A stretch of DNA of 63,439 bases, the filler included, from Choristocarpus tenellus KU-1152 (Eukaryota > Protista > Phaeophyceae): the NCBI GenBank assembly GCA_964200185.2. It is 8 parts of 8 records of this genome, joined end to end, with 100 filler letters (N's around TTAATTAATTAA, not from the genome) between each part and the next. Parts side by side here need not be neighbours in the genome. Positions count along the whole stretch, not along the records: positions 48,860 to 53,558 come from CAXNAD020013416.1; 7 more parts are not named here. One strand, given 5' to 3'. Numbering within the stretch: position 1 is the first letter of the stretch; every line of letters starts with the position of its first letter. Made by a program: the position numbers and the translations under genes. The notes below the pieces were generated by a model. The model was given only the letters and a program-made list of their open reading frames with translations. It was not told the origin of the DNA and did no database searches. Shown piece after piece: positions 3,201 through 53,558 of this stretch.

Positions 3201-3542
3201 TTGCTTACCTGAAATTATGCGGAAGAAAAAGTACACTGTGTTGGGGCTATCTGATTATCTCTCTCGTTTCTATGTTTTCATACATGATCAAGAGATCCGT
3301 TGTCAAATGCAATATCAACCTCTGATAGAGCGTGTCGTAGGTACAACAACGAATCGCGACAAATTTCTGTAGTATTTCCCCAACAACAATACTAAAGGTC
3401 GTCAATTTAGCGTACTGACCGAGAAGCCTTTCCCTCTCCATCTGTCCGGGAGATCGAGCTTGGTACCCTTATATGAATCGCCAATGCTGATGTACGCCCC
3501 TCCGTCCACCATGTTCTTGTTGAAGCGTTTAGTGGAATACAT
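252..3542 (-). CDS. Conserved uncharacterised protein, probably ciliary/flagellar (YISIGD..Y and GFGTKDAFRRGEFTATIRTEQYR motifs); 3' end not found in the window
   Basis: Five phase-compatible GT-AG exons (3542-3420, 3061-2934, 2633-2501, 1878-1792, 347-252) give MYSTKRFNKNMVDGGAYISIGDSY..RWRGKGFS|VPQKPKNAENG..KRKQGFG|TKDAFRRGEFTATIRTEQYRDLL..|..FLYDIGRSQ|VTEFDPKHSRDRFY; ciliary role is inferred. Confidence 0.8.
1270..1525. mobile_element. MITE family B, divergent subfamily B2
   Basis: TIRs GACCCAAAAGCATTTAAGAGAGTAGGA / TCCTACTCTCTTAAATGCTCTGGGT, probable TSD TGCT; interior similar to 59502-59767; lies in an intron. Confidence 0.75.
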
Positions 3543-3989
3543 AGTCCCTTTGTCTTGGGTTCAAGAGCACTACAACACCCTGTAAAATTGGTGACAAGTG
3601 CCAAACAAAGTATTTCTGTTTGTGGAGTTCCAAGGTTTCCAAAACGAAATCAAGAGGGCATGGACTGGTTGCCAATGCAACGTAATAACGACTCGACCGT
3701 GCACTCTACAAAGTTTTTCCCACTATTTTCATGGGGTGTTCAAGGACGGGTACTGGGTAGGGGAAATCGAAAATCAAAAAGGAACTCAAAAATCGAAAAG
3801 GAACAACACAAACCTCCGTTTCACAGTTTCATTGAAGTGGACAGATTGAAGCAACCAATCAAGGTGTTGAAAAACTTGTTTGTTGTATCAAAATTGTTCC
3901 TGTACTGGCTCTCTCAAGATTTTTCAAGTATCATAGATAAAATAGCCAACTACCACTTTGTCTCTATCATCTTGACCAAAGTAGTCGTG
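3543..3989. promoter_or_regulatory. Putative bidirectional promoter / 5' UTR region
   Basis: 447 bp between two divergent ATGs (3542 minus, 3990 plus). Confidence 0.5.
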
Positions 3990-5456
3990 ATGGAAGACGC
4001 TACCGTCAAATGCCTCCAGTGTGGCGAAGGATTGACTCGTGGAGGGAAGTTCTGTGGCTCATACTACACGGTGAATGCTGTTGAGAAGGTTCACAGAGGT
4101 ATGTGTTGACTGATAGTACGTACAAGGTATGCTCGTCGCCAGCATAGTGGTGCAAACAAAGCATGTCTGTTATGTTTCTAGAGGAATCTTGTTATCAACC
4201 CCTTATACGTGCTTGTCCTTTTGCTGGTTGAGTAGGGGCTCAGCTTGCATAGCCTTGAATGGATCCTCTGGTTGCCGCTCTCCTATACCAGAAAGTCGTA
4301 CCTCCAACCCTAAATAACCAGAGTGCTGGGAAATACACAAGATCTCCAAGGCAACAAGATGTGGACACTGCCAGGGACCCGTGGTGTCAATACCTGGTCA
4401 ATTCTCTGGTCGGTCCTTCAACAGCGAAGGAGGGATAAAAGTGCATGAGGTCTGTCACTCTTCCTTCCCTATCAATAATTGTGTGAGGTGGAAACGTTGA
4501 CACAACATGGACCTTCAGTGGCCAGTCCTACATCACCCCAAAATTTCCTTCCCATTGTGCCCTTCGCCTGACCCTCTGGAAACACATCAAATAAGGAATG
4601 CTGGGAAGCCTATCGGATTAAGAATGCGCCGACATGCGACCATTGCAAGGAGCCCATTATGGAAAAACCGAAGCGGTTTAGCGGGAGATTTGTAAATACC
4701 AACGGGCGAAAGGTTCACAGGTGATCTGCCCCCTTCGGTCCGCTCTTCTTCCCTCCGGTCCCCTTCATTGCCAGCAGCCCTTGCTTGACCTTACGAATAC
4801 ATCGATCTTTTCTGTCGGATCAAGGGTGTAAATGGATGTCCTCCTGAAGGAATTCCCACCTAGCCGCGATCGCAGGCGTACTGTCACGCATGGGTGCTTC
4901 TACCCGTACCAGTACTCATGCCACTACTAATATAAGCAAGCCAATCTTAATTTTTGTCATACGGAGGAGGTCGTGCAAGTGCCTTGAATATAACCTTTGG
5001 TTCCAGCTCAGAACACGGTTCTGCTTCAAGGCATGTGTAGAATCTTCTCTTATCTCCTGCCGCTCTGCACTTTCACACCCAAGTCTCCTATTAGACCAGC
5101 ATTTAACCGAACCCAGCTCTACCCCTTACAGATGTTCAGATTTCTGGTCTGACAACAATTAATGATCAGTGTTTAACCCAAGCAAGCGTGCTGGTAGGTC
5201 TACCATGTCATTTGAGTCTAACGTGTTTTGGCCAGCTGCCATGCTGTATAATGCTATCCTTCCCCCCCCACCTGTCCTGTCCCGTCCCGATCCCCATTTT
5301 CTCACTATTTTACCTCTGCTACCCAGTGAGTGTCTTCAGGCATACCAGGAAGCCTCAGCCCCTCTATGCGCACACTGTAGCCAGAGGGTCTCTCCAGTTC
5401 CAGGCCGTTTCAGTGGTTCCTACTGTATTGTGGAGGGTGATCTCAGAGCTCATTCT
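3990..5456 (+). CDS. Tandem zinc-finger protein with four C-x2-C-x23/24-H-x2-C (half-LIM-like) repeats; 3' incomplete
   Basis: Exons 3990-4098, 4322-4449, 4596-4720 and 5327-5456 splice in frame: CLQC..KVHREC, CGHC..KVHEEC, CDHC..KVHSEC, CAHC..RAHS|. Confidence 0.85.
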
Positions 5457-6414
5457 GTGAGTGGTTAGTCCCTCTGTAAGTGATGACACCCTGCAGAGTC
5501 TTGCCGATGTTTTGGAGGGCAGTGTGCATAGTGTAGTAGAGTGATATCTAGACGAACGGATCATCTGACATCTTTCAATGACACAATTGGATGCATTTGC
5601 CCATTGAAACTTAAGTTCATACAATATCAATTTTGACTCTGTGTGTGTCTGTGTGTCTTACCTATACTGGGATTTATGATCAAAATCAGCCATTTGCACC
5701 CACAGATCATATTAGTGCCAAAGAACAGAAGGGTAAAGCACATTGTTAACCAAAGGAGGGGTGACTGTCATCAACAACCATGTAGCCTTTTTTCTAGTTG
5801 TGTGTGCAGGCACTGACAAGCATGTAGCCTCTGTGAGTATTGAAGAGCCTCTCCTAATCCCTCCCTCCCCTCGCCTCCCCCCCAACCCCCTTCTTTTTTT
5901 ATGTAACGGAAACGGTAACAGAGTTTTTTTCTTTAATCTCTCACAAATTGGCTTGGCTATTTCTTTCTTCTTCAAATTACTCTGCTTGTCGGATGTTTTC
6001 AGTATGTGTTGAACACATTTATTGCTTGTATGGTAAGAAAAAGGAGGGTCTTACGAAACGGCGCTCAAGAACACTCATGGAAGCTTACCACTGCAATCCT
6101 GACTCAAACCTAAGAGATGTTTCCCTAACCCTAACCTTTTTTTTCTTTTTCTTGTTAAAGAACTACGGGCTGGAATGGCTCGCTGTACGATGGGGCTGAA
6201 ACTCCGGCATATAAACAAAAAAATAATTTACCCTCGCAGCATACAAAAAATCTTCCGCAAGAACAATAAAAGATCTTTCGGAGAGATAAGGAGTGGGATG
6301 AGGGTTGGGGGGGGGGGGGGGGGGGGGGGGGGGAAAAAAAAAAAAGAAAAGGGAGAAGCCTCCCTAAAAAAAAAAAAAACAAAAAAAAAAAAAAAAAAAA
6401 AAAAAGGATGTGGG

Positions 6415-6514
6415 NNNNNNNNNNNNNNNNNNNNNNNNNNNNNNNNNNNNNNNNNNNNTTAATTAATTAANNNNNNNNNNNNNNNNNNNNNNNNNNNNNN
6501 NNNNNNNNNNNNNN
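6415..6514. other. Artificial contig linker
   Basis: N44-TTAATTAATTAA-N44, stops in all six frames. Confidence 0.98.
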
Positions 6515-6709
6515 GTGCGCTTTCGCACCTCAGCTGCAGCAGCAGCTACACCATTGCTGGTGGATGAATGGGTGAGATGAGAGGTTGCCTGTACCTCTGC
6601 GAAGGTGACGTCAAGCAGAATACCTTTGTCCCTGTAGGGAGCTGTTCTGGCGTCTGCTAGTGCCCCTGCGTGGAACACCAGATCCATGCGGAGATTCCTG
6701 TCCACTGTG
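6515..6709 (-). mobile_element. CRE/R2-type non-LTR retrotransposon fragment, restriction-like endonuclease domain
   Basis: DRNLRMDLVFH..KGILLDVTFAE..AAAAAEVRKR matches the REL-type RMD..DVT..E.RK pattern; homologous to 10960-11150. Confidence 0.75.
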
Positions 6710-6871
6710 AAAGTGTCAATATCCTTGTTCTGGAGACACCTTTCATAACGTACGCATTTTACCTACTCCGAGATATTTTGAAGTAGGAAAATGTCATTAA
6801 AAAAAATATGGGAAGCCAAGCCCCAATGAACAAACGGGGCAAAACTCGTACCCTCTAAGATACTTTCACTC
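6710..6871. mobile_element. MITE family B, partial
   Basis: Interior homologous to other B copies; ends TACCCTCTAAGATACTTTCACTC. Confidence 0.8.
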
Positions 6872-6874
6872 ACT

Positions 6875-7302
6875 TGTCGAATAACCTAGTGTTATCCTTA
6901 CGTTATTAATGCTGACACAAGTATATAACATAGGTTGTACGTACGTTTATAATTAGTTAGGTATGATACAATGTACGAACGTGCATAAAAATATAATAAG
7001 TCTTCATTCACACGTCACTGATGATGGATGGCTGACGGGCAATCAATATTTCAGTGTATGTTTTACCATGTAATTCAACTTCTAGCTTTTGGCGACGAGC
7101 CTAGGGGAGGTGCAGCCTGACTGGTTTGGTTTGGACTAGACGCTTAAGCGTGTTGAGAAGCTTGGCGCATGTAAGGCTCATCGCCTCGGTGTTGGCCCAC
7201 CGGTCGCCATCATGTGGCGGAGGCAGTACAGCAGCAGGCGCATGCTGGCAGGGTGGGCCAACACCGAGGCGACGAGCCTTACATGCGCCAAGCTTCTCAA
7301 CA
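6875..7302 (+). repeat. 5' LTR of Copia-1, containing an inverted duplication
   Basis: Direct repeat of 10134-10388 with ~170 bp extra near the U5 end. Confidence 0.85.
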
Positions 7303-7324
7303 CGCTTAAGCGTCTAATCCAAAC
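7129..7324. repeat. Inverted repeat: ~73-bp arms, ~50-nt loop
   Basis: 7129-7201 is the near-perfect reverse complement of 7252-7324. Confidence 0.92.
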
Positions 7325-7381
7325 TCTAGCTAGGGGAGGCGCAGCCGGACTGGTTTGGTTTGAATTGGTATTACATCACTC

Positions 7382-10069
7382 ATGGCTACTGATGATGGGT
7401 TTCATAATAAACTCCTTCAACTTACAGATGACAACTATGCCGATTGGTTTGCTACAACCCATGCATTTTGGGGGGTGAAGGGGGATATTGACGAGGCATT
7501 GGAGTACAGAGAGGAACCCATCACGGTGGGTGATATAGATTTCATGTAGAGGAAGGTGAGGATGAAGAAGAGATCACCAAGGCCGGCGTTCGAGAGCCAC
7601 GATACAACAAGCTGCTCGTTCGCGCTACTTCTCTCTCCAACGGGAAGCAGCTGATCGCGGAGAGCCCGGGAGCACTCTGGCCGCGAGGACCGTGAAAAAG
7701 GCTGGCCGAGGTGGCAGCCGGGGTATGACTGGTCATCGCATTGACCCTGGGACGACAGGATCCCGTTCCAGAGGGCTAACCCAGGCCCGACAGAGATGTG
7801 ATAAGTGTGGATTGGTTAGACATTACGGCTCCTGTACATTTAAAGGACCGTGTTGCAGCTGCGGGAAGAATGGCCACCTGCGAGCTGTGTGCCCCTAGAG
7901 GAGGGCAAACCCGTTAAAGTCGGCGAGAATACTAGCTGAACCAGACGAACCGGCTAGGGAATCTAGGAAGTTCAAGACCATGTTATCCACTGTGGCTGAT
8001 AATGGCAAGGATAGATTGGATGCTTTCGAAACGTGGTGTTTTGATTCAGGTGCTTCCAACAGTGTAACAAAAGACTCTAAGTACATGTATGACTTCATCA
8101 CATGTCCATAAGGCCACAACATGACCGTGGCTGACCGCACATCACTACCCATTGTGGGGTATGGCAAGATTGATTTGAATCTCAATGTTGGCCGCGATGA
8201 GTGGGTGCATGTTACTCTGACGTCTGTTACACTTGTCCCGAAGATAGCTTTCAATCTTCTCTCTTGACATTCTGCTAGTAGGGCTAAGGAAGTGAATAGC
8301 AATGTTGGTGATGTTGATGGGGTGGATGAGGCCAAAGACAGCCAATGTGAAAGGGAATTACGACGACTCAGCATTGGAAATGGTGAAGACAACACGAGAT
8401 CAGGCAATCATCCTACTTCCGCCAAAGCTTCCGTTTTTAACGTGTCCAATTTTTTTTATTGACTTGTTTGTCTGTTTTCCATTGAGACTATCCTTGTGAT
8501 TTGTGTGAGTGAAAAGTATATTAGAGTGTTAGCGGGTGAATTCCCTCCAGAACCCAAGACTGTAAGAGCAGCACGTAGCTCTCCCAAATGTGATTTATGG
8601 GATCGAGTTAGAGCAGAAGAGATGTCTGGTTTGTTGTTGAATAGTGTTTGGGTGGAGGCCGTATTACCCCCTGGACGCAGGGCAATAGACACTAAATGGA
8701 TTCACAAGCGTAAGACAAACAAATTTGGTGAGGTAGTTAGATATAAGGCACGTTTGGTAGAAAAAGGTTTTCGACTGATTGAGGGTTTAGATTACCAAGA
8801 TACCTTTGCACCAACACCATCTCCTTCGTCTTTAATAATGGTTTTAGCATTAGCTGCAGACAAGGATTAGGAATTGAAGCATTGGGATGTGAAACAAGCT
8901 TTTATCCGAGCAGACATAAGTGAAGAGATCTCTGTTCGTTTATGTGATGGATGTGGTATATGGTCTGGAAAGATTGTCCGTTTAGTCAAGGCACTTTATG
9001 GCACCAAACAGGCAAGCAGAGAGTTTAATAATCTGTTGGTGCACGTTTTGGAACAATGTGGTTTTGAGCAATGCAGAGCAGATCCTTGTGTGTTACGCTA
9101 TGTAAGAGATCGCGTTGTTTGTGCTGTGATAGCCCCTAACGTAGATGATCTTTTGGTAGCTGGTAAAATAGATGTCTTGATTTGGGTTCACTCTAGGATC
9201 AAATAGCAGTTTTCCATAGAAGATTTTGGGGATCTTTAGTATTATATGGGTTGTGAGATTTCACATGACAGAACTGCACATACTGTCACCATCAGTCAGA
9301 CTAGGTACATCAAGAGTGTCAAAGATTTGGTATGGATGGGGCAAAGAAGAGATCGGTACCCCATGATCTCTCAAGGACCCTAGACAAGAGTGAGAGTCAT
9401 CCAAGTGTTGATGAAAATACACCGTACAGAGAGGCAGTTGGTAGTTTGATGTGGGCATCTGTTATGAATAGGCTTGACATTGCAAATGCAGTTTGTGAAG
9501 TTGCCAAGTACAGTAGCATCCAAATGTCACACAATGGTGTGCAGTGAAATATATTTTAGCATATTTGAATACATGTCCCAGTGTTGGATTGAGTTTTGGT
9601 GGTTTTGATACTGAGTGTGAGTTGAGTGCATATGCTGATGCTAATTATGCCGGAGACTGGAATGATCGTAGATCAGTGACTGGAGGGGCGATATCTTGTA
9701 TGTCAGAGGTACAAAGAGTAGTAGCTCTGTCTTTCACGGAGAGTGAACACATAACTCTTAGTAGTGTGGCACAGGAATTACTTTTCTTGAGAAGCGTTTT
9801 TTGAGTTTATTCAGCCACAGTTTCCTAGGCGTTGCATTGACTATTTTTGAGGACAACGATGGTGCATGCAAACTAGTATGAAATGCCACAAGCTCTACTA
9901 GAACAAAGCACATTGATGTCCGACATCATTTTTTGAGGGATTTGTCTAGAAAAGGAGAGATTCGTGTTGTTTTTGTTGGTACTGCAAATCAAAGGGCACA
10001 CATGTATTGACCAAGATTTTTTCACTTCGAGTTCTTAGACAACGTGTGAAGTTTTTGATGAACATGTGA
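7382..10069 (+). pseudogene. Copia gag-pol remnant
   Basis: Gag LTDDNYADW; Zn knuckle CCSCGKNGHLRAVC; protease WCFDSGAS; RT RYKARLVEKG, DVKQAF, LYGTKQA, NVDDLL; RNase H YADANYAGD..DRRSVTG, RTKHIDVRHHF; many stops and frameshifts. Confidence 0.93.
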
Positions 10070-10133
10070 GACAACGTATGTGTTTTTGTTGTGATTGTTT
10101 GAGAGTAAATACTTGTTTTCAGCAAGGGAAGGA

Positions 10134-10388
10134 TGTCGAATATCCTAGTGCTATCCTTACGTTATTAATGCTGACACAAGTACGTAACATAGGTTATACG
10201 TACGTTTGTAATTAGTTAGGTATGATACAAAGTACGAGCGTGCATAAAAATATAATAAGTCAGCATTCATTCACACGTCAGTTATGATGGATGGCTGACG
10301 GGCAATTAATAATTCAGTGTAGGTTTTACCATGTAATTCAACTGCTAGCTTTCGGCGACAAGCCTTACATGCGCCAAGCTTCTCAACA
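10134..10388 (+). repeat. 3' LTR of Copia-1
   Basis: Follows the PPT; TG...CA termini. Confidence 0.9.
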
Positions 10389-10410
10389 CCACTGCCAACC
10401 TTCCAGATGA

Positions 10411-10601
10411 GCTCAAGGTATCTGCAGGGGGTGTATCGGCTGTCCATTCAGGACCCATTTTTCCATGTCGATATTTTCCAAAGGGTGATTTTGTTGCATG
10501 CGTCGGATGTATAATATAAGTAAAGCGCACTTTTCTCCTGGTCAGCGTCCGAGTGGACACCCTGGTGTAACCCCCCCCCTCCCCACTAGATACTTTGAGT
10601 C
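10411..10601. mobile_element. MITE family A
   Basis: TIRs (G)GCTCAAGGTATCT / AGATACTTTGAGTC; TSD ATGA. Confidence 0.85.
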
Positions 10602-10611
10602 ATGATTCTGA

Positions 10612-11183
10612 GGAAGAACCAAGGGAAACCATTCTTCGGTAGCTCTAGCCGGTCACCGCAGACAGTGTGAGCAAGGGGTCAATGCATGGGCCTCCACACA
10701 ACATTAGAATCAGCATGACGGATTCCTCCAGTAGAGTTTAGTCTCATCACTAGTAGATCTCTAGGAAGGGAAGAGGCCCTATCCAACAGATGCCCAGTCA
10801 CAGGGTGCAGGACCCACGACGTCTATACCCAACATACCCATACCTGCCCTAGGGGCAGGAGGACAAATACCCCAGCACATGCTTTACGGTGAAACGTCTG
10901 GGTCAACTCTACAAGGGAATGGGTATCCCTTGCACTATGGTGGATGGCCGCCTGTTTGCAGTGGATAGGAACTTCGGCATGGATGTGTGATCCATGATGG
11001 GGCACTTTTGGACCCTGACTCAGCTCCCTACCGGAACAAAGGCCTCCTTCTGGATGTTGCTTTGGAGAAGTCCAAGCAGCCTCCCATATGCCTCACACAT
11101 CCACCAGCAATGGTGTAGTTACTGCTGCAGCCGAGGCCCAAAAGCGCCCCCACTATAAGGGGATCTTTTGACCCTCACAGTTT
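10612..11183 (+). mobile_element. CRE-like non-LTR retrotransposon 3' fragment
   Basis: Homologous to 28699-28920 (SLGREEALSNRC) and to 6515-6709 (AAAEAQKRPHY); frameshifted. Confidence 0.75.
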
Positions 11184-11935
11184 TGGTATCGAGTGTAACA
11201 AAACTGACCACCTACAGTGTTGGCACTCGCCTACTCCATCAACTTTATCGTGCCATAACTTTTGATCAACAACGAATGTTTTCATTAAAATTAGTTTGTT
11301 GTGATCGCATCAGCATGCTTAACCTTATTTGATGGGTCTCGGTTGATCAACTTAGAGTAATCGTGAGAAATACAGGACCATACTTTAATCAAGTAATCCG
11401 CGCAGAACTTGGGGGTTGTTGTCTCTCCATTCTCTTTCCATTATTTCCCATTTATGCGATGTTGTCACCTCCTGGCTAAGGCTCACTCATGAGGGGGCCA
11501 GTCTCTGAACCAGACAATCCATGCCAAATCAAATGAGGTATTCTGAAGGTGCAGGCCTCCTGTGAGACTTAAATGCCTTGTATAACCTGTCCAGTTTTGT
11601 ACACTTCATTCCTTTCTTGTCGGAATATATCAGGTGGTAAGCAATACTCATCCTGAAGAACCGCTCCACAATTACTCTAGACAGCCCCTCTTCATCCTTA
11701 AGACTGACAGGAATGTTGACTCTCATTCCAGGCAACTTGTAGTCACAATGGCCTCGTACATAGATAGTGCTTCGTCCGCCCCCATACCATCTCTAGCGGG
11801 TTCAATTCACAGTGGTACTTTGGAAGCATCAAGCAGTGTCCTTCAAGATGCTCAACCAGAATCGTGTCCTGTGAGTGGCTTAAACCGTATTAAGCCGAGG
11901 TTAGCCCACGTACCGTTTTGGCGGTGATCAATTTT

Positions 11936-12218
11936 GATTTTTTAAAGGGTTGCCCAACGTATTAATCGACGATCAGCTCTGGATCTAAGCCATCGACTGA
12001 TGCAAAGTAATTATTTCGGAAAAATATGCTTGGTCGTGATAGTTCATCCCGGAGCATTTCCAAGTTTGTGCCGAAAACATTCGGTTAAAATTTAACCTCA
12101 CCAAAATACTTTTCCGAAAAAGTTACTTTGCATCAGTCAGACGATAGCTTAGATCCAGAGCTTTCATTTGATATGCCCATCGTCGTTTATCTCGTTGGGT
12201 AACCCTTTCAAAAAGATC
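11936..12218. repeat. Imperfect long palindrome (foldback), probably part of a DNA transposon
   Basis: 11936-12032 is reverse-complementary to 12101-12218 (AAAGGGTTGCCCAACG..AGCTCTGGATCTAAGC..GACTGATGCAAAGTAA). Confidence 0.8.
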
Positions 12219-13423
12219 GTAGACTGGTCTCATCCTAGAGGCGACTGCCAACACTATACTCACTAAATAGAAACTTATTGTGGACTGGTGTTATATAAGT
12301 TCCAGAGATACATGTCTCCTGATATTGTCGTTGTACGTACACCATGTTCTTCATGACTTTGAACCAAGAAATTCTAAGATGATTATTGATCAGATGTATT
12401 ACAAATAATATCAAATTTGCACATAGACCTTAATCTTCAATATTTTGCACGCATTTTTCATTTTTCGCTTGGAATGGTTGAACGAATTCGAGAGTTGGAC
12501 TAGAGTCAAACCAATTGAGAGGTAGGCAGGTTTGGACCATTTTGTATTCCAAGTTATCTTTCTTAACCTGTGCAGTACACTCTGTCTCATTGCTTTAAGG
12601 TGTACAATAGGGCACAAAATTAATATTCCTCCTTTCCACACACAAAGGTGGCACCACACTTCAGCAAAGAAAGATTCTTTCTGGAATTGTACAAAATGGC
12701 CTCTTTTTCCCATTTCTTGGGATCCTTATAATGAAACCCTGCCTACCTCACAGTTGGTTTGACTCTGTATTTACATTATTAGCCCTTGTCACATAATTTT
12801 GGTTTGGCTTTTTCCTTGACTTATCTCCAAAATGTCGAAGGGCATAATAGTAATACTTCACTGTCAGTGATGTATCTCTTATAAATAGCTGTATGCTTTT
12901 TTTTGTATTGTATATATCTCCACTATAATGTATCTTGAGGTGTCCAAGGAAATCTCCGACTTGTCCTCAAGATCGATCTGCGGGCGGCCAATTTTCGGCT
13001 AAGTACATGGCCTAGTATTATTTTTAAAGTTCCATCCTCAATTTTTGAAATCGGCTGTTTTATGTAGCGTTTATTTCCCATTTGCGAGGTGCATTTTGTG
13101 TTGGTGGTTGTCATATTGGGGGTGGATATTGTAGATTTATATTTGGGAGGGGGTAGATTTGGCAGTTAGGTCAGTGGCGAGTGGTTTTGAGGGGGAGGAG
13201 GGTGATAGGCAGAAGGATGGGAGACGGGTATAAACCTAGTTGATGAGGGTAGGGGGGGGGAAGAAGAGGACAGGAGGAGGGAAAGGAGGGGTCGTGTGAC
13301 TGGTGAAACGTTAGGTGTGGGTATACACTGCCAACATTCCAAGGATTGTTGTAATGATGTAAGTGGAAGATTGGTATTTTAGTTAGTATTGCTTTGGAAT
13401 AATGTTGATGCTATGTTTCCTGT

Positions 13424-13470
13424 GGCTCAAAGTATCTGGGGGGGGGGGGGGGGGGGGGGTTGACACCGGG
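13424..13470. mobile_element. MITE family A end at a contig break
   Basis: GGCTCAAAGTATCT followed by poly-G. Confidence 0.75.
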
Positions 13471-13570
13471 NNNNNNNNNNNNNNNNNNNNNNNNNNNNNN
13501 NNNNNNNNNNNNNNTTAATTAATTAANNNNNNNNNNNNNNNNNNNNNNNNNNNNNNNNNNNNNNNNNNNN
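13471..13570. other. Artificial contig linker
   Basis: N44-TTAATTAATTAA-N44. Confidence 0.98.
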
Positions 13571-14726
13571 CCTGATTTTCGGACTGCTTTCTTTGCTTTC
13601 ACCTACCACTCATTTCTATTAACCATCTCGTCCCTTCCTTACCTATTCCTTCTCTTCCTACTTCTTTCTTTTCCTTTTTCCTCACATTCTTATCCTGTGC
13701 AACAAGAATTCTTCCGCCCACAAAACTCAGTTTACTTCATAAACTCTTCCTTCAATAGTCTAGTGTATAATATATACGTTTTTTTCTCGGTTTCCTGTCT
13801 TTATACGTACGAAACATTCTGATGTGCATTTGATGAGCTTAAAAGTATGTTTGTAATCATTGCACTTTCATTCATATATACCAGCAACTAGATCATGGGT
13901 GGAAGATGAATGAGGTATATTAGACACTGCTTCCAATTTTGAGAACACAATATTCAAGAGAGCGAGGGCTTCTGTGCTGGTAGGGTGCTGATCCAGCGTT
14001 TGGAAGTGTCTCAGCATGAAAGACATCACCAATGCGAAACTTCCAGTCCACTACGAATGGGCTCCAATCTTCCATATTGCAAGGGATATTCATTCGAATA
14101 TGCAGTTGACATAGAACCCTAACCATGAAATGTTGCTGTCATATGTGTCTGGACAATGGAGAATTTCAACTTGTAACCTCCTTCGAAGCACATATAATAT
14201 TACATAAGAGAAGCGGAATGCAAACAGAAAGGAAACTTAACTTTTTTTGCGTCATATCTTTATGGTTCTGTGTCACTTCTAGAAGTCCTTAGAAAATAAG
14301 AACCGCAGAAATCACTGACATCAGCAACATCCCATTTCGAATACGAGAAGTACTCTTCACACGAAGTTTTGCAAGACCATGTTTCATCCATCACCTCTTC
14401 TTTGTCACAACCAAGTACTGCCCCACACACCACAACCGGACCCTTAATAGCTTCGTTGAGACAATGAAGTATTTTACGGTAGGAAGTGTTCTTGGGTGTT
14501 TACGCATAGTCTCGGGGGTTGAAGTCCCCGACATGTTGGAAATGCATAACGAGAAAAGGTGATTCGTTTGGGAAGTGTTGTCACACGCGATACAAGGTTT
14601 TATCGTATTGTTCAGAATTGTGTAAGTGTTACACTCTCTCTAAACTTTTCTTGTAGCCACGATATCTATGTTATTTTAGAAACGTTTCATTAGTTCAGTC
14701 TTTGGTTTGTCCACTGTCTTGTACAG

Positions 14727-17176
14727 GTGCCTACATGATGCCAATGATCTTACCCGCGACCAAGCTCTGGTTGATGCGGCTCAGGTATATTCGCTTTCGC
14801 TCGGGTAGGAGACAGTCTCAAGTTAATGCTCTTTCTCCAAACAGTTGAATTCACCCACTAAATATCGCTTTGAACATGCCCGCTTGAGTAGAACTTCTTG
14901 TTGGAGCACCCAATCGTCCAACGTCTTGATCACAGCTCTAATTCTTACATCTTTTTTGCATATGCAACAGGTATGGGCTAATCATCTCGCCACAAACGTC
15001 TGTTCCGGCAAAGTATACGATACCGGTGACTTTGGAGAAAATATCTACCTTTGTACTAGTTCGACTGGAGATAATGCTGATCCTTGTGTTGATGCTCAAT
15101 ACATTATTCCCAACTGGTACGACGAGGTTACAATCTATAACCAGGGCGACGAATTCAGTGAATGGACCAAGCAATTCACTCAGGTATATGTGGCTACATG
15201 TTTGTGTCTTAAAGACTAAGAACAAATACAGTAGCAAAATAAGGAAGTAGCTGGCACGTCGTGACCACCACTATACCTACCTACCTACCTACCTACCTGC
15301 ACTACTTGTCGCATCTGAAATATTAGGTCCAGCAAAACTTGATTTCCATTGCATTTTAACATCTAGTCACACCCCTCAATATACGTGTAGATGGTTTGGA
15401 AAGCAACCACAAGTCTTGGATGTGCAAGATCTCAATACTGCGAGGGTCAAGGGAGTTATAATGGTTACAACGTGATGTTTGCGGTTTGTCGCTACAGCCC
15501 AAAAGGCAACATTGCTGGGCAGTTCAACGACCAAGTTCTTGCCGATCCACAAGCCACTTGCAATGGTGGAGGATCTGGTGACCCTCACATGTCTGGGTTG
15601 AGAGGGCAAAAGTTTGACTTCTCTGGAGTGAGCAACTCTTGGTATGCACTGCTCCATGAGAAAAAGGTTAGCATCAACATGCGCGTTACAGCTCCGGTTC
15701 CTGGCCTCGATCTCATCACTTACATAACGGGGATCGGCATGGTCCTCACTGGTTATGATGGGGAGAATCACACTGTGGTCATTACCGTTGAGCATCCAGA
15801 GGACCTTCAACCCAAGTGCCCGAAAGACCAGGTTCCATGCATTGCGGACGGGGCTCTATCTGTGATCGTTGATGGTGACAAGGCTGGACTAGGGAAGGTG
15901 CGTTTCTTAACTTCTGTCTTCATTGGATTTGTAGTTGTGCTTAGTGTGTCGACTTCAAATCATTTTAAGATACTTCTCAAGTTCTGTTCATTCATGACCA
16001 AGGAATCAATCTAGGTGTAGTTGAAAAGGTATTGAGAGGCAGTACTTGAGGCTGAATACATTCATTGGGCTGGTTAACAAGTGAATATACTAAGTATCCA
16101 AAGGCAGAGGTGTGCATTCTTCCTGCTTTTGATGTCCCACCATGATATTTTATTAGCTCTAATGAACATCTACTGAGTTTCACCGTTGCTATACGTTTTG
16201 TGCTACCTCGCCATAGGTATCTCTTGGTGGTGGTGTTAGCGTCACTGCTGTCAACCTTCCTGGAGAGTGCCGGCCCTTTGGGTTTGAACAGTACTGGCTG
16301 GAGAAAACGAAACTGTCTGAACAAATTGGTGTAGACCAATCTCGACGCCTTGTCTCTGATGTGCCGGTAGAGGATTGGATCTTAAACGAAACCAAACAAA
16401 CAAACCCTGTTGAATGTGAGGAATACGTTCTCAGAGCAGCAGCAGACGGCACCCTATTTGACTTGCAATCTGAGCACACCTCATTCCAGATAACATCACC
16501 TGAGTTGTCCCTACGTATCAACCATGGGAAGATCCACCAAGTGGCAATGCGAGACCCAACTGACAAGTTCGATCTTCCTGATCACATAGCTTATCAGATG
16601 AACATCATTGTTGAGGAGATCAGCCTAGATGACGATCCTCAGGTATGCACTCTGGGGAAGAGAGTTGTTTGATTTAGTAAGGATGGGGTTTCTTAAATAT
16701 TTGGCCCGAATAGAAAATGTGTTGTGGGGGTGAGTTGAAAATGATTTGATTCGCATTTCTCGCATATGCAGTATTGTTGGTTAGTACATGTAGCAAATTT
16801 GACGTGTGATTTCATTGCAATGTACCTCTTGACCACTAGACTTCAATGTCTCGAAATAGTCGGCGTAGAGATCAGATGAAAGGGGGACATGTTTTGCATT
16901 CTAACAAATTCTTTCACTTTAGGGATTTTTCAATAATAATGGTGATTCTTTGTTGCATATGAGCCACATTGAATCTATAAACTTAATGGTACAATTGATA
17001 ATTTGGTGCTGTACTGCAAACGTTGAACTGTGCAGGGTATTTTGGGAGAAACTGTTCATCCAACTGTGAACGAGATGGGAGAGTTTATCATGAGAGGACC
17101 TGGCGCTATTCGTGGGAAGGAAGAAGACTACGTAGTGGCAGACCCTCTTGCAATGGGCTTTATCCTTCACGTGTGA
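14727..17176 (+). CDS. CAP (SCP/PR-1) domain fused to a GDPH-motif VWD-like domain; probably extracellular; 5' exons unresolved
   Basis: Exons 14727-14784, 14971-15183, 15391-15897, 16217-16642 and 17036-17176 in frame. CAP: GENIY..WYDE..FTQMVWK.TT.LGCA..VCRYSP.GN. Second domain: GDPHMSGLRGQKFDFSG..NMRVTAP..RDPTDKFDLPDH..GILGET. Confidence 0.9.
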
Positions 17177-17886
17177 ATGATATAATCGCCAGCAATTGCT
17201 TTGTGCAACAACATGCGTGGTGTGTAAGGAGTGAATTAAGTAGTGAAGAGTTGAGCTCGTATTGATTCGAGTGAGTACTAATAAGTCACATGCCCTAAAA
17301 TTGTTTTCAGTTTTGGAGTTGGAAATAGTCAAGTGAAGGTAATAATTGCTTTTATTCTGGGTTTTATTCAGTGTCAATGTTTGCAGGAGGTATTATTATC
17401 TTTGCATTAGAAATCAAGGGGGTAAGCTCCACTCCTCTATCATCCAACTCAACTGTGAGCAACCAAGAAGGTGGTTAGGTGGAAGAGATTACCTTGACCC
17501 TGGCCTTGTTAACTTCGAAACTGAATTTGACATTTCCTGTGGTGTGATATACCCATATCCATCCATCCACGAACATTGTTGGTGACAAGTTCTGCACCAT
17601 AATTTTGTCACTGATGTCGGTAGTTACTATTTGACATATCTGGAATATTTCTTCATTCCTATCGTTTTAAGAAATATTCTCCAACTACCACTGGAGCTCA
17701 AGTGTTCCGACCTCAAAAGAAGTACATGAGGTCAAAAGCGTGGACTGGACCTCTCACAATGAAGCGTCCCAGCTTTGTTTGACGGAATGCCAAAGAATTT
17801 AGACAACAGTTTATTCAAAGTCTAATTGTTTCCTGTCTGTGGGTTATTTTACATTACTACCACACTAGAGAATGTTCACAGAAGTT

Positions 17887-18146
17887 GAGCCAAAGTATCA
17901 TTAGAGCGTAGAGTCGCGTCCGTTTGGGGGTCAAAATCCAATGATGCTATTTTGATGCAATCTTGGCTATCGTGTTTGTTAGGAAGTGTCAGTACCCTTG
18001 TTCCAGACAGACCTTTTCATAACTTTCACATTTTACCTACTCCGAACCATTTTGGAGTAGGTAAAATGCCATAAAAAGCCCGTGGGAAGCCAAGTCCCAA
18101 AAGGACTATCAGGGCAAAATTCGTACCCTCTAAGATACTTTCACAC
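17887..18146. mobile_element. MITE family B
   Basis: TIRs GAGCCAAAGTATC / GATACTTTCACAC; flanks AGTT/ATTT. Confidence 0.85.
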
Positions 18147-48859: not shown

Positions 48860-48886
48860 GTTGCAAAATTAACGCTTGACACCTAC

Positions 48887-50818
48887 CTCTCGATGGTCTG
48901 ACAGCTCCTTATCGATGGACTCGAGGATGGTGGAGTCGTTCGTGGGTTTTACACCAGGCGCACCGTGCCGCTTCTCTTTTAACGTGACACATATGTCACA
49001 TTTCATAAACTCGCCTCCTACCCTGATGTTGGGACTGTCCTCTCTGAGCAATCGGAGGAAGTGCGCCCTGCTTACCCACTTGGAAGGGTCGTCAGGATAC
49101 ACCCGTATTGCCTCTTTGCAAAAATCCTTGTATAGCTCCTAATTTAAAATGTTGGTTGCGTAGGCAAGTGAGGAGTTATTGAGAAGGAACACTCGAAGAA
49201 TACCCCTGCAAGGTCTCTCGAAGGCGGACTGACCAATAACTTGACTGAGAACGCGGAAGACAGGATCAAGCAAGCTTTCATCCTGCCTTACAAAAGAGCA
49301 AATACAATGATCTTCGTAAATCTGCCATGAGCGTCATTCCGTTCGGGCCTCGCTGCCGTTTGCAGAAGCAGAAAAGGAGGCGAATCTACCATCATCATCA
49401 TCATCATCGTGAAGCGCTTTAGACATACGAAGTACACACTTTTCCTACCAATGTCAGACCGGGCTCGGGGCCGCAGAGTAGGTGTACACGTTGTTGAAAT
49501 AACAGTTATTGTGTCTTCCTTCGTAAAATCGACGAAGGATATCATCATGAACATTATAATCTCGACATAGCAAACGAAAAAAATAGCACTTCGTACGAAT
49601 TTTGACATGTTCTTTTAACCATAATATCAGTGATTAGTCAAAGTAATGAACATCCACGACTCGAAGTACTACTTAGATCCACCTTTTCAACGTACGGCCA
49701 GGTCACACGGTTTGCATCTAACTCCAACACAGGGTGCGGCCAACCTCTCCACAACCAAGGGCAAAACCGACTGTTTGTTCGCGGCGTAGATCACAATTGT
49801 GGACTTGTGAGGCATGAACTTCCCGTATGTATCAGCCCAGTAGTCTATCCAGGACATCACCAGGTCTCGCTTCGGAGCCATGTCCTTATCTTTCTTCGTG
49901 CCGTTCCTGTTATAGTAGCGCACGTATGTATATACATTGATGGGAGATGTGTTGGAGGTGGATACGAGGGACGGGGGATGGAATCCTAGAGGGATCGTAT
50001 GCCAGCAGCGGATCTATAATTCTGTGCATATTTACGCGTGGTAACTGCTGCAGCAGCACGGGGATGGTAGGATGAGATGATATTGTTCAAGCATTAAAAA
50101 ACATATCATGCGTGTATATACATATATAGGTAAGTCATTACTCCACGCTGGAGGGATCTCTAGCTTTGTATATCAGACATCTAGGCATGGGAACTGCAAA
50201 GTGAATGTGGTGAGTACGGTCGGATCACATTGTTCTCAGATAGGATTACTGTTCAATCATCAAGCAGGGTTGAAAATATACCGGGTACAAGTAACACTGT
50301 GTACATACATCAAACCCACCTCTCCACGCCAGTGGGTGCTCTTGCGTTAGGTGTGCCTTTGCAAGCGTCGATGACATGATTGGATATCCCGAACGATGCC
50401 TTGAAAAACTGCGTGCAGACGGGAATGCCGGCCGCGAGCATTGATCCACCTCCAGGTCCCAACTTAATCACAGGTACACGGTCGCAAACGAAGTGCTTGC
50501 GATCGCGGCGGTTCTCACACGCCCGGATGATGTCCTGCTCTTTGGCCAAGGTGCGTGCAAGGAAGGACTCGCCATCTGCCGCGAACTTCTTCACACAGGC
50601 TAAGCGCTTGCAGCAATCATCCTGTTCGTTGACCGGGATGGGTTCAGCCCATCCTCGGCGAAGCTTAGCGCCGGTCGCTGAAGCGTCCTTGGTAGGAAGC
50701 TCCAGCGCATCATTGTTGGCGGGCTGGTGAGGGGGCAACTCGGCGGGAGACGTAGGCAACAAAAACCACCCCCTTGCTGTGGAAGCAACTGTCATGGTGG
50801 TTTCGGGCAACAGGCGGT
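48887..50818 (-). CDS. Spliced Sola-type (Sola2-like) DNA transposase, N-terminal half; catalytic domain expected beyond the contig end
   Basis: Exons 50818-50320, 49906-49768 and 49138-48887 splice in frame without stops. Motifs: CC..LAC; VCTQFFKASFGIS; W......GKFMPH; LYKDF..SRAHFLRL; FMKCDICVTL..H. Confidence 0.7.
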
Positions 50819-50869
50819 CTTGGGCAGTGAGAAGGTGTAGGAGTTATTAGATTCAAAGACGAGCATACG

Positions 50870-51570
50870 AACTTTGTTTGAGCCTCGGACGATCGGTGAG
50901 ACAGCCCTGAGATCCATGATCCTGAAAATCCGTGCGGTACACTTTTCGGAAGTTGTAAATCAGATTCTATCCGTGAATTATAATTTTAAAAAATCCAATT
51001 ATATCCGTGATTTGTATTTTTTTAGATACTAATCTCATACTTCATTCATATTGTACATTTCCAATGTTCCGAAATCAACTTTGTTTGAGCCTCAGACGAT
51101 CGGTGGGACCACCCTGAGATCCATGATCCTAAAAATCCGTGCGTTACACTTTTTGGAAGTTGTAGATAAGATTATATCCGTACTTACAATTTTTTTAAGA
51201 TACCAATCACACACTTAATTCATATTGTACATTTTACCAACTTTGTTTGAGCCTTGAGCGATCAGTGGGACCACCCTGAGATCCATGATCCTGAACATCC
51301 GTGCGTTACACTCTGTGGAAGTTGTAGATAAGATTACATCCGAACTTACAACTTTTTTTAGATAAAAATTCACATACTTAATTCATATTGTACATTTCCA
51401 ATGTTCCCAAACCAACTTTGTTTGAGCCTCGGGCGATCGGTGGGACCACCCTGAGTTCCATGATCCTGAAAATCCGTGTATTACGTTGTTAGGAAGTTGT
51501 AAATCCGATTATATCCGTACTTAAAAATTACTTAAAATACAAAGCATATATTTCATTGATCTTGTATGTT
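50870..51570. repeat. Tandem array, four units of 162-207 bp
   Basis: AACTTTGTTTGAGCCT..GATC(G/A)GTG(G/A)GAC..CCCTGAG(A/T)TCCATGATCCT..ATCCGTG starts at 50870, 51077, 51239 and 51414. Confidence 0.93.
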
Positions 51571-51639
51571 TCCAATGTTTAGTAACCAAAGCGTCAAAAA
51601 TACAACTAGCACCCTCAAGGGTTTTGAAGTATAAAATCT

Positions 51640-52140
51640 TACCAAATTGGACACTTGGATTCTGGTAAATAGTAGAGGCGACAAAAAGTGGTTCTTTGAG
51701 TAAAACAGATCCGATCTGATCCGTTTTACTCGTGAACACCCTAAACACGTGCATTAGGATTATTGGAAATAGTAAATCCAGTAATAACCGTTCTTACAAT
51801 TTTTGAAAATACCAAGGACGCACTTTATGGGTCTCACACGTTACTAATGTTCAGAAACTAAAAGGACACTTCCAACTGGTACCCACAATTTATTTAAATA
51901 CTAAATCCGCTTCTTGGCGACTTTAGTATTCTTAGAAATAGTAGAGACGACAAAAAAGAGGATCTATGGTATTAAAGATCCGATCTGATCCCGTTTACCG
52001 TTGAACACCCAAAACACGTGCGTTAGGGTTTTTATGAAATTATAATGATATTCTAATCTTTACATCAACAAATATAATTACAAACCACATCCTTCATTGA
52101 TCCAATACGTTTGAAATGTTCGAAACGAAAAGGTCACAAA
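51640..52140. repeat. Diverged two-copy direct repeat, period ~270 bp
   Basis: AAATAGTAGAG.CGACAAAAA..GATCCGATCTGATCC..GAACACCC.AAACACGTGC.TTAGG at ~51667 and ~51936. Confidence 0.85.
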
Positions 52141-52374
52141 AAAACTGATACTCTCTGTCCCATTTGAATATGAAATCGTATGCTGTTTGATATTCGAATT
52201 TTTTATAACACAATTATCAACGGAAAGACAAATCTGAGTTTTGAGGACCAACCGACCAGATGAAAGAAAACAGCACCTCCCAGCCCTCAGTTTTCATTTC
52301 AATTCATTCCCTTCCGTACATACCATGCGGACCTCTTCCTTATCCATCCCCATCACACCCTCCCAATCTTCGCC

Positions 52375-53469
52375 ATGTCTAGCATTCCCTCAACAACAAC
52401 CCACGCGCCCGCCGATGGCGCTGCCCACGGATCGAGAACGTGGGACAGCAATCTGAAGGGCATGTCCTCGCTCCTGGAGCATCACTACCTCAGCACGTAC
52501 CGGATGAAACTCAGCAACATCACATGCACGGAGATGGTACGTCCCCTGAGTGAGCGTGGCCTTGCGCGCGTCAGCAAGTCTATACAGGAGAAAGGCTGGC
52601 TGGAGCAGTTTGCTCCATCTGTTGTAATACAGCGAGACTGTTTAGGTAATGGGGACCAGCTCAACGCCGAAACTGCGCTTGCCATTCAATGACGTACACT
52701 GGACGGAAACCATAGAATAACGGTGCTGAAGAGGGAGTTTGAGCCCGAACGCGCTTTCATGATGCGGATCTAGATGGAGTTCAACCAAGCAGAAGAGAGG
52801 CTAATTGCCAACGGTGGGTGATGGAGTGTTTTCGTTGTTCCATGATCGCTTGACCATTCTGATCAAGCAAGCAACAAAGTAAGTTGCTTAGTTTTTTCGT
52901 TGATCCGTGATCGCCTGATGATTATTACCATCAAGTAAGCAACAAAATAAGTTGATTATTTTCGTTGTTCCATGATCGCCTGACCATTCTGATCAACTAA
53001 ACAACAAAGTAAGTTGATTGTTTTCGTTGATCCATGATCGCCTGATGACTATTACCATGAAGTAAGCAACAAAGTAAGTAGAGTATTTTCGTTGTTCCAT
53101 GATCGCCTGATGACTATTCTGATGTACGAAGTTGTTGCCGAGTTTCCTTTGCTTCGTTCATCGTCAGTCAGCCCATTGTGGATCTTTTCCTTGTTCATCT
53201 TTTTTATCCCTAGTGGTCTTCCTGTCCACAGCAACATGTTGCTCAGTACAGCATGATGCGTGTATCCCGCGACCGCTCCCCACCTAACCCTTGTCCCATT
53301 CTCCCACTGCACCGCCACGCTTATAGCATTCAACGACGCGATTGAGAGTGTGGTTGAGCGCACGCTATACAATAAGATATATTTTCAACATGAGCTCCAA
53401 GAAGCTAACAAGCGACAGACGAAGAAAAAAGAAGTGTCACTAGCAGAGATCCGCAAAATGTACAAAAAG
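52375..53469 (+). pseudogene. Intron-containing ParB/Sulfiredoxin-fold gene with two premature stops; 3' truncated by contig end
   Basis: Exon 52375-52813: VRPLSERGLARVSKSIQEKGW..APSVV..LDGNHRITVLK..EERLIAN, with stops TGA 52690 and TAG 52771. Phase-1 GT-AG intron to exon 53327-53469: AFNDAIESVVERTLYNK.. Confidence 0.78.
52829..53123. repeat. ~64-bp tandem array, ~4.6 units, alternating A/B variants, in the ParB-like intron
   Basis: TTTTCGTTG(T/A)TCC(A/G)TGATCGC.TGA..AGCAACAAAGTAAGTT at 52829, 52894, 52959, 53021 and 53086. Confidence 0.93.
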
Positions 53470-53558
53470 GTGAGGGAGTTGTCGACATTGGTGGGATGGT
53501 TGCGCTCTACTCCTCCTCTAGTTGGGTTACAGATGTTGTGAAATCTCTCTGTGTCCTC

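Follow-up and report, generated by a model that had tools for sequence, protein, structure and literature searches.

Can a transposase gene and a gene for a ParB-like protein, lying side by side on a contig of a brown alga, belong to a single mobile element? The question is raised by one piece of DNA from Choristocarpus tenellus KU-1152 (assembly GCA_964200185.2). The piece occupies positions 48860-53558 (CAXNAD020013416.1) of the window, which is the whole stretch of 63,439 nucleotides. An earlier note had proposed that it represents a new transposon architecture, in which an intact Sola-type transposase gene and a ParB-like gene are read in opposite directions from a region of repeats.

On its minus strand the piece carries coding exons 1-3 of a Sola1-type transposase, and on its plus strand exons 1 and 2 of a gene with a ParB/Srx fold. 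Very probably it derives from the interior of a single decayed copy of a giant, high-copy Sola1-type cut-and-paste transposon and spans the promoters. Intact members would carry a multi-exon DDE transposase and a divergent multi-exon ParB/Srx accessory gene, both mobilized together within long TIRs. The firm ground for this reading consists of the gene layout, splicing at the level of the family, the protein fold, the co-occurrence of the two genes and, in a relative, TIRs with a candidate TSD.

The transposase gene

The transposase-like gene starts on the minus strand with an ATG at 50795. Coding exon 1 (50320..50795), for the N-terminal region, has nine homologues at 54-70% identity and ends before a GT donor at 50319. 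Intron 1 (49907..50319, 413 nt) is spliced at a CT..AC joint in three contigs of run X3. Exon 2 (49771..49906) is 92% identical in amino acids to locus L010 and 65% to L009. Exon 3 (48887..49138) encodes an F-M-K-C-x-x-C motif and has five homologues; it contains an in-frame 6-bp deletion relative to L010, and run X3 contigs show loose ends at 48887 and 49140.

All three exons described in the earlier note are real, but they form the N-terminal part of the gene rather than an intact whole. A GT donor at 48886 closes exon 3, run X3 contigs continue past the edge of the piece into exon 4, and in relatives the gene has seven or more exons. These include DUF7869, which we take to be the Sola core. 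It was matched in downstream exons of L009 (E 1.9e-16) and L012 (E 5e-21) and is also present in those of L010. Judged by the homology of exons 1-3 to these three loci, the transposase of the piece is a Sola-type DDE enzyme whose core lies beyond the contig. A Pfam search with the exon pieces of 48860-53558 gave no significant match. Assignment to the Sola1 class is suggested by a comparison by eye, in which exon 1 resembles the N-terminus of the Sola1-1_Ec32 transposase of Ectocarpus and no likeness to Sola2-1_Ec32 is visible.

The accessory gene

The ParB-like gene starts on the plus strand with an ATG at 52375. Exon 1 (52375..52813) encodes the ParB/Srx domain and has about 50 family members. 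It is followed by a GT..AG intron of 513 nt (52814..53326), supported by a spliced joint in run X3, and by exon 2 (53327..53469), which encodes a helical region after the ParB domain. Exon 2 of L008 shares 53-59% with those of the piece, L001, L002 and L004. The motifs and the intron quoted in the earlier note are present; the two-exon structure is not, as a donor (53470) follows exon 2, the gene runs on past the piece and relatives have additional exons.

Pfam and PDB sequence profiles gave no ParB match to the family alignment, and the fold call therefore rests on structure. A model of exon 1 of a relative, P0013 (68% identical to ParB exon 1 of the piece), reached a pLDDT of 87. Foldseek matched it to PadC (E 1.9e-4) and ParB (3e-4), the PadC/ParB matches spanning 2e-4 to 5e-4, with a VIA Z of 9.6 and an rmsd of 2.4 over 91 residues. 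The predicted ParB/Srx fold is thus confirmed by modelling on this relative, though not by a sequence profile. The conserved R, G-W..P and D-G-N-H-R motifs fall at the positions of the nucleotide-binding boxes. Partition ParB carries a G-E-R-R patch where the accessory gene has G-N-H-R. The helical region of exon 2 looks by eye like a candidate HTH; its model is of low confidence (pLDDT 48) and has no fold match.

A decayed copy

The copy at 48860-53558 is a pseudogene, and neither full protein can be made from it. The intron-2 donor of the transposase gene lacks its G, reading CAG/TCGG after exon 2 where other copies read CAG/GTCGG; other copies have an extra C behind 49770, and the comparison with L010 likewise shows the donor G. 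The ParB frame is interrupted in exon 1 by TGA at 52690-52692, just ahead of RTLDGNHR, and by TAG at 52771-52773. In other copies these sites are Gly and Tyr codons, and the stop allele at 52690 is missing from nearly all other copies among the public-run contigs. Because of this decay, the word "intact" could not be upheld. Any movement of such a copy would have to be driven in trans. Beyond the piece lie the ends of this family member, its catalytic core and its C-terminal domains, in agreement with the earlier statement that the contig lacks the transposon ends.

A family of linked genes

In public runs, thousands of diverged contigs (80-99% identity) cover all 30 bins of the piece, spacer included. 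Run X1 yielded 6,946 contigs, mostly 90-95% alike and covering every bin, and spliced joints in both genes were found in run X3. The nearest kin of the piece are Choristocarpus tenellus contigs at 80-90% nucleotide identity, with paralogous contigs L001, L002 and L010 at 75-90%. Named relatives of the ParB gene come from Choristocarpus, Sphacelaria and Ascophyllum.

The head-to-head pair was found in four of the seven informative loci (L001, L004, L009 and L012), down to about 35% protein identity. In these loci, the transposase and ParB identities fall together (86/84, 68/68, 65/56 and 36/32%, respectively; Spearman 0.85). L012 is a complete element of 17.4 kb, in which 729-bp TIRs at 88% identity with termini AACAG..CTGTT enclose both genes. 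TTAA flanks it on both sides; this sequence is palindromic, could itself belong to the TIR and comes from a single locus. No match to the L012 TIR was found in the piece. Co-occurrence within shared TIRs, which the earlier note proposed to look for, is thus seen in one relative, and the note's central idea of a large eukaryotic Sola-type transposon with a ParB-fold accessory gene is supported.

The spacer

The start codons are separated by 1,579 bp (50796..52374; 38% GC), of which 78% consists of internal direct repeats, as expected from the repeat-rich, head-to-head layout first described. A degenerate tandem array (50864..52140) begins with about four units of 162-207 bp, which grade into units of 269-273 bp. 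It contains six in-register, GATC-containing sites (50891, 51098, 51260, 51435, 51708 and 51977), which are variants of the palindrome GATCCGNCGGA(T/C)C.

This motif recurs twice in L001 and twice in the otherwise unrelated spacer of L004, the copies (TCCGNCGGA) being confined to the spacers. The L009 spacer holds five copies of CGAACNGTTC, and none occurs elsewhere in the 20 kb of that locus. No clear shared palindrome was seen in the L012 spacer. Such family-specific short palindromes in several spacers may be candidate binding sites; their selection was visual, and copies in tandem do not count as independent.

GATC was counted 20 times in the spacer of the piece, versus 5.4. Its enrichment was rejected as a general signature; because it is missing from L009 and L012, it was put down to duplication. 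Positions 51931..52081 may be a minus-strand intron of 151 nt, with a good GT donor, a pyrimidine-AG acceptor and a CT..AC joint in one run X3 contig; it would possibly lie in the 5' UTR of the transposase transcript. A bacterial promoter scan stayed at chance level, and an Rfam search found nothing.

Contrary to the earlier proposal, the element's design does not include the repeat arrays as a conserved feature: the spacers of L004 and L012 have no tandem array.

Proposed mechanism and alternatives

A mechanism for the accessory protein can be proposed that has, taken as a whole, about an even chance of being right. The helical region after the ParB domain would bind a short, family-specific palindrome in the protein's own element, and the ParB domain would form a dimer or clamp gated by nucleotide. 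At the C-terminus, an N4C/N6A methyltransferase-like domain, as reported for Ectocarpus, would mark the element or regulate its promoters. A stronger version, in which the eukaryotic transposon would house a genuine parS/ParB-type system, is unlikely. The protein would load at a family-specific palindrome between the promoters, close into a nucleotide-gated sliding clamp and carry a tethered 4mC/6mA methyltransferase across the element that encodes it, and palindrome and protein would diverge in step between families (GATCCGNCGGA in two families, CGAACNGTTCG in another).

In profile searches, spliced models were searched exon by exon. Methyltransferase profiles (Pfam, PHROGs, PDB) did not match the relatives' downstream exons. 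An Atlas search of these exons gave a single sub-threshold lead (0.87-0.88) that included PF01555 clusters, and a further search for the domain gave no usable hit. PPR matches in the same exons were dismissed as summed repeat noise.

The two genes might be neighbours by chance, a Sola fragment lying next to a host gene of ParB type or to a non-autonomous element of separate origin, and ParB genes with no transposase found within 10 kb upstream (L007, L011 and L013) would fit. The idea is very improbable, as the entire piece is multi-copy, spacer included, and it is largely refuted by the four other head-to-head loci and the TIR-bounded pair of L012. A ParB fold accompanied by palindromic repeats could also point to bacterial contamination or to a ParB/parS partition module from a virus or an episome. 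This is barely credible: spliceosomal introns are backed by run X3 joints, bearing out the earlier argument against contamination, and the named kin are brown algae. Scans of viral and JGI metagenome contigs and of PHROGs found no relatives. L012, moreover, is chromosomal and bounded by TIRs and a candidate TSD. No ParA-like gene was noticed there, and the partition-like role once suggested for the gene has no support.

Two further alternatives are more likely. Instead of binding sites, the spacer repeats may be selectively neutral tandem duplications of local origin, within a promoter/5' UTR region, a view that falls only a little short of an even chance. Besides the spacers that lack the array, unit number differs among copies (run X3 joints; L001). 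A 65-bp tandem array in ParB intron 1 (52829-53118) has 4.5 units in the piece versus about 1-1.5 in L001, L002 and L003, and the possible minus-strand intron would place part of the spacer array in a 5' UTR. On the other hand, the 8-bp palindrome core is kept twice in the L004 spacer, which otherwise has no match to that of the piece (shuffle mean 0.005), L009 independently has its palindrome in each of five units, and the red-algal PAG3 genes show the same association of ParB and repeats (10.1101/2025.02.11.637652). It is also conceivable, if with rather less than an even chance, that the ParB gene, though part of the element, does no more than bind DNA to regulate the promoter shared by both genes or assist the transposase, and that its methyltransferase-like domain has no catalytic activity. 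Candidate catalytic and SAM-binding motifs look degenerate by eye (DPPM in L008; no FxGxG in L012 or L013), methyltransferase profiles did not match, and inactive methyltransferase domains are known from DIRS1 retrotransposons (PMC4738411). Profile matches are weakened, however, by the decay of the copies examined and by the exon-by-exon search, and PMC12477816 predicts an N4C/N6A methyltransferase for the Ectocarpus protein.

Significance

The discovery is modest, because a Sola1 and ParB arrangement was published for Ectocarpus in 2025 and the copy studied here is broken. One new aspect is a wider spread in brown algae than the Ectocarpus-specific label given to the ParB-methyltransferase gene in a table of PMC12477816. 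Together with the named relatives of the ParB gene, the linked pairs, down to about 35% identity, show that the arrangement is a lineage co-inherited across brown algae. The other is the family-specific palindromes in several spacers: these concrete candidates for binding sites bring within easy experimental reach the published hypothesis that a transposon binds its own DNA and modifies it. Plant VANDAL elements are the only transposons known to do so (10.1101/2025.02.11.637652).

Comparison with known systems

The closest known system is Sola1-1_Ec32 of Ectocarpus. According to PMC12477816, this element is 21.5 kb long, has AACCG-CGGTT termini and a 4-bp TSD, and encodes, on the strand not used by its transposase, an accessory protein of 1,104 aa that combines ParB with an N4C/N6A methyltransferase. 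The head-to-head layout at 48860-53558 is real, but the genes are neither intact nor complete and the architecture is not new. Both are giant elements with a ParB-domain gene on the opposite strand, and their Sola1-type transposases look homologous by eye over the stretch between exon 1 and the C-x-x-C motif. Relatives of the piece also share the VDN..ENKN and GHTH motifs by eye, and L012 has similar termini (AAC(A)G versus AACCG) and a candidate 4-bp duplication ending in A. The piece differs in belonging to another family and genus and in being broken, and the methyltransferase domain reported for Ectocarpus was not confirmed among its relatives. The part of the source at hand words the layout as "opposite strand" without stating head-to-head, and mentions neither spacer arrays nor palindromes.

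PAG3 of red-algal Plavaka/EnSpm elements (Bostrychia) also anticipates the arrangement, with an N-terminal ParB domain and adjacent tandem inverted-repeat arrays proposed as binding sites (10.1101/2025.02.11.637652). Like PAG3, the gene described here is a transposon accessory gene with an N-terminal ParB domain beside repeats; PAG3 differs in its transposase superfamily, its C-terminal 2OG-oxygenase and its three-gene cassette.

Bacterial ParB, Noc, KorB and PadC, as well as sulfiredoxin, share the ParB/Srx fold and nucleotide-binding-box motifs. Unlike bacterial ParB, the accessory gene has introns, no Pfam ParB match and no ParA, and is carried on a eukaryotic transposon. A last, possible parallel is the chlorophyte-type Dam family 2, in which a eukaryotic adenine methyltransferase goes together with a ParB-type module, the origin lying in phage ParB-Tls and R-M loci; it is described as a ParB-type HTH fusion in chlorophytes and chytrids (PMC4738411).

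Genes and splicing

The piece (48860-53558) is 4,699 bp long, with a 38%-GC spacer flanked by two GC-richer coding regions. The transposase gene, on the minus strand, has exons at 50795-50320 (start at 50795), 49906-49771 and 49138-48887. The ParB gene, on the plus strand, has exons at 52375-52813 (start at 52375) and 53327-53469. Contigs of the public run X3 contain spliced joints for transposase intron 1 (413 nt) and the ParB gene intron (513 nt), and X3 loose ends fit the transposase exon 2/3 junction and a fourth exon outside the piece. Though not recorded as an RNA run, X3 is RNA-like: joints occur in X3 only, and depth tracks exons. At the family level, the accessory gene, which diverges from the transposase, is expressed and spliced. 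An earlier note had the gene arrangement right, but each gene runs off a piece edge, stopping at a splice donor (48886 in the transposase, 53470 in the ParB gene).

A (CAT)6 microsatellite lies at 49390-49408, inside transposase intron 2. One X3 contig skips 151 nt at 51931-52081, with good minus-strand splice signals, so the transposase transcript, or else an antisense RNA, may begin near the ParB gene and include the repeat array in its 5' UTR.

Identity of the two proteins

Spliced gene models were searched one exon at a time. Transposase exons 1-3 align in the same order to the related loci L009, L010 and L012, and later exons of these loci match DUF7869 (E 1.9e-16 and 5e-21) and bear D..ANQ, VDN..ENKN and GHTH motifs. 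The transposase of the published Ectocarpus element Sola1-1_Ec32 has, by eye rather than by computation, the same motifs and a similar N-terminus: for instance, its EDRKRFV..HVP corresponds to RDRKHFV..RVP of the studied copy, and its GSMIAAGTPVC to GSMLAAGIPVC. By these sequence features, the transposase is Sola-type.

Sequence profile searches with the ParB protein gave no ParB match. About 50 brown-algal-type exon-1 proteins keep R, G-W..P and D-G-N-H-R. P0013, a relative's protein 68% identical to the studied copy, gives an exon 1 model (pLDDT 87) that matches PadC, ParB-CDP, KorB, Noc and sulfiredoxin (Foldseek E 1.9e-4 upward; VIA Z 9.6, rmsd 2.4 over 91 residues). This predicted fold and the conserved motifs bear out the ParB assignment.

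The helical region after the ParB domain looks HTH-like by eye; the model of this region was of poor quality. Later accessory-gene exons are conserved among L004, L008, L011 and L012. Inspection by eye and a sub-threshold Atlas lead suggest a methyltransferase-like C-terminal part; profile searches for it were all without match.

Linkage of the two genes

The head-to-head pair also occurs at L001, L004, L009 and L012, with transposase/ParB identities to the studied copy of 86/84, 68/68, 65/56 and 36/32%, respectively. The identities drop in step, and the genes travel together. The earlier note had asked whether the pair recurs, as it does at these four loci; the other readings raised there also fail, as the ParB gene is no single-copy host gene and neither protein has the wrong fold.

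L012 has a complete Sola-type element of 17.4 kb (525-17927) with both genes inside, termini AACAG..CTGTT, TIRs of 729 bp (88% identity, with 129-bp tandem units inside) and TTAA on each side. It is a good reference copy for the lineage.

At L007, L011 and L013, the three other loci with sufficient flanking sequence, the 10 kb upstream of the ParB gene or gene fragment contains no transposase, as expected of decayed or non-autonomous copies; the remaining loci are truncated or not long enough to judge pairing. The distant multi-exon ParB-family gene at L013 10001-18300, with no Sola transposase in 10 kb upstream, may be part of a non-autonomous or different giant element. In Ascophyllum (L011 16444-17226), accessory-gene exons abut sequence that shares 82% identity with the L009 transposase region at its far end, which points to a rearrangement or internal deletion. 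The Choristocarpus copy L002 (1-850) breaks off within the spacer array, where it meets unrelated sequence that has inverted repeats of its own; the probable cause is truncation or a nested insertion. A short dispersed repeat, inserted repeatedly, produces many cross-matches among introns and flanks of L007, L009, L011, L012 and L013.

Spacer repeats and palindromes

Internal repeats make up 78% of the studied spacer, which has six in-register sites containing GATC. The repeat share is 65% in L001, 45% in L009 and 0% in L004 and L012, and unit number differs between copies; the array is therefore not a fixed feature. The array of 65-bp units in the ParB gene intron is a local expansion.

What recurs is a short palindrome, not the array. 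L001 has two copies of TCCGNCGGA, and so does the L004 spacer, which is unrelated in all other respects (shuffle mean about 0.005); in the studied copy the versions are degenerate. A different palindrome, CGAACNGTTCG, occurs in five units of the L009 spacer and nowhere else in 20 kb; the L012 spacer has no clear counterpart. The palindromes are candidate sites only: they were chosen by eye, copies within a tandem array are not independent of one another, and L012 lacks a clear counterpart. A palindrome of 34 bp at 51698-51731 is near-perfect; with the G that other copies carry at 51717, its core becomes a perfect GATCCGATCGGATC.

Copy number and decay

From the public run X1, 6,946 contigs align to the piece, mostly 90-95% alike, covering 30 of 30 bins, spacer included. 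At several places the studied copy's own letter has a depth of 14-44, against 15,000-56,000 for other letters. This hints at a family of several hundred to roughly a thousand copies; the figure is rough, since depth summed over contigs does not measure copy number. For both protein and DNA, the closest relatives come from Choristocarpus tenellus contigs (about 75-90% nucleotide identity); further named relatives are from Sphacelaria rigidula and Ascophyllum nodosum. The host is thus probably C. tenellus or one of its near kin. Viral and JGI metagenome contigs were scanned and no relatives found. The family is a high-copy one, hosted by a brown alga.

The studied copy is broken: its ParB frame has stops at 52690, immediately ahead of RTLDGNHR, and 52771, and its transposase intron-2 donor lacks the G present in other copies. 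The earlier note's description of the transposase gene as intact is therefore not confirmed. At the two stop positions, L001 and L002 encode Gly and Tyr, and 52690 is G in nearly all other copies, including all in X3. An alternative GT three bases past the donor would, on sequence alone, preserve the frame.

Proposed mechanism

Cut-and-paste by a DDE transposase acting on long TIRs is established for the superfamily. Intact copies would move in this way, and L012 has the TIRs and a candidate duplication, TTAA. The accessory protein would bind the element's own palindromes, the candidate sites, and use a putative C-terminal methyltransferase-like domain to mark the element or regulate it; the chances of this whole role are about even. 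The main rival makes the protein a non-catalytic regulator. Conserved C-terminal exons (L012 15379-15579, L013 17215-17415, L008 7808-8068) have methyltransferase-like motifs by eye, and since they show no clear FxGxG or DPPY/F, the methyltransferase is possibly inactive in some families. Nothing supports a role in partition.

Comparison with known systems

PMC12477816 presents Sola1-1_Ec32 as a 21.5-kb element whose opposite strand carries a gene for a 1,104-aa ParB and N4C/N6A methyltransferase protein. Self-binding and self-modification are proposed there, and the paper's table lists termini AACCG-CGGTT, TIRs of 282 bp and a 4-bp TSD. In Bostrychia, red-algal Plavaka elements carry ParB accessory genes adjoining tandem inverted-repeat arrays (10.1101/2025.02.11.637652). 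The studied copy, which the earlier note had put forward as a candidate new architecture, is thus a new, decayed member of an already described element type. Beyond published work, the analysis adds the breadth of the lineage, the conservation of its head-to-head layout and family-specific candidate sites.
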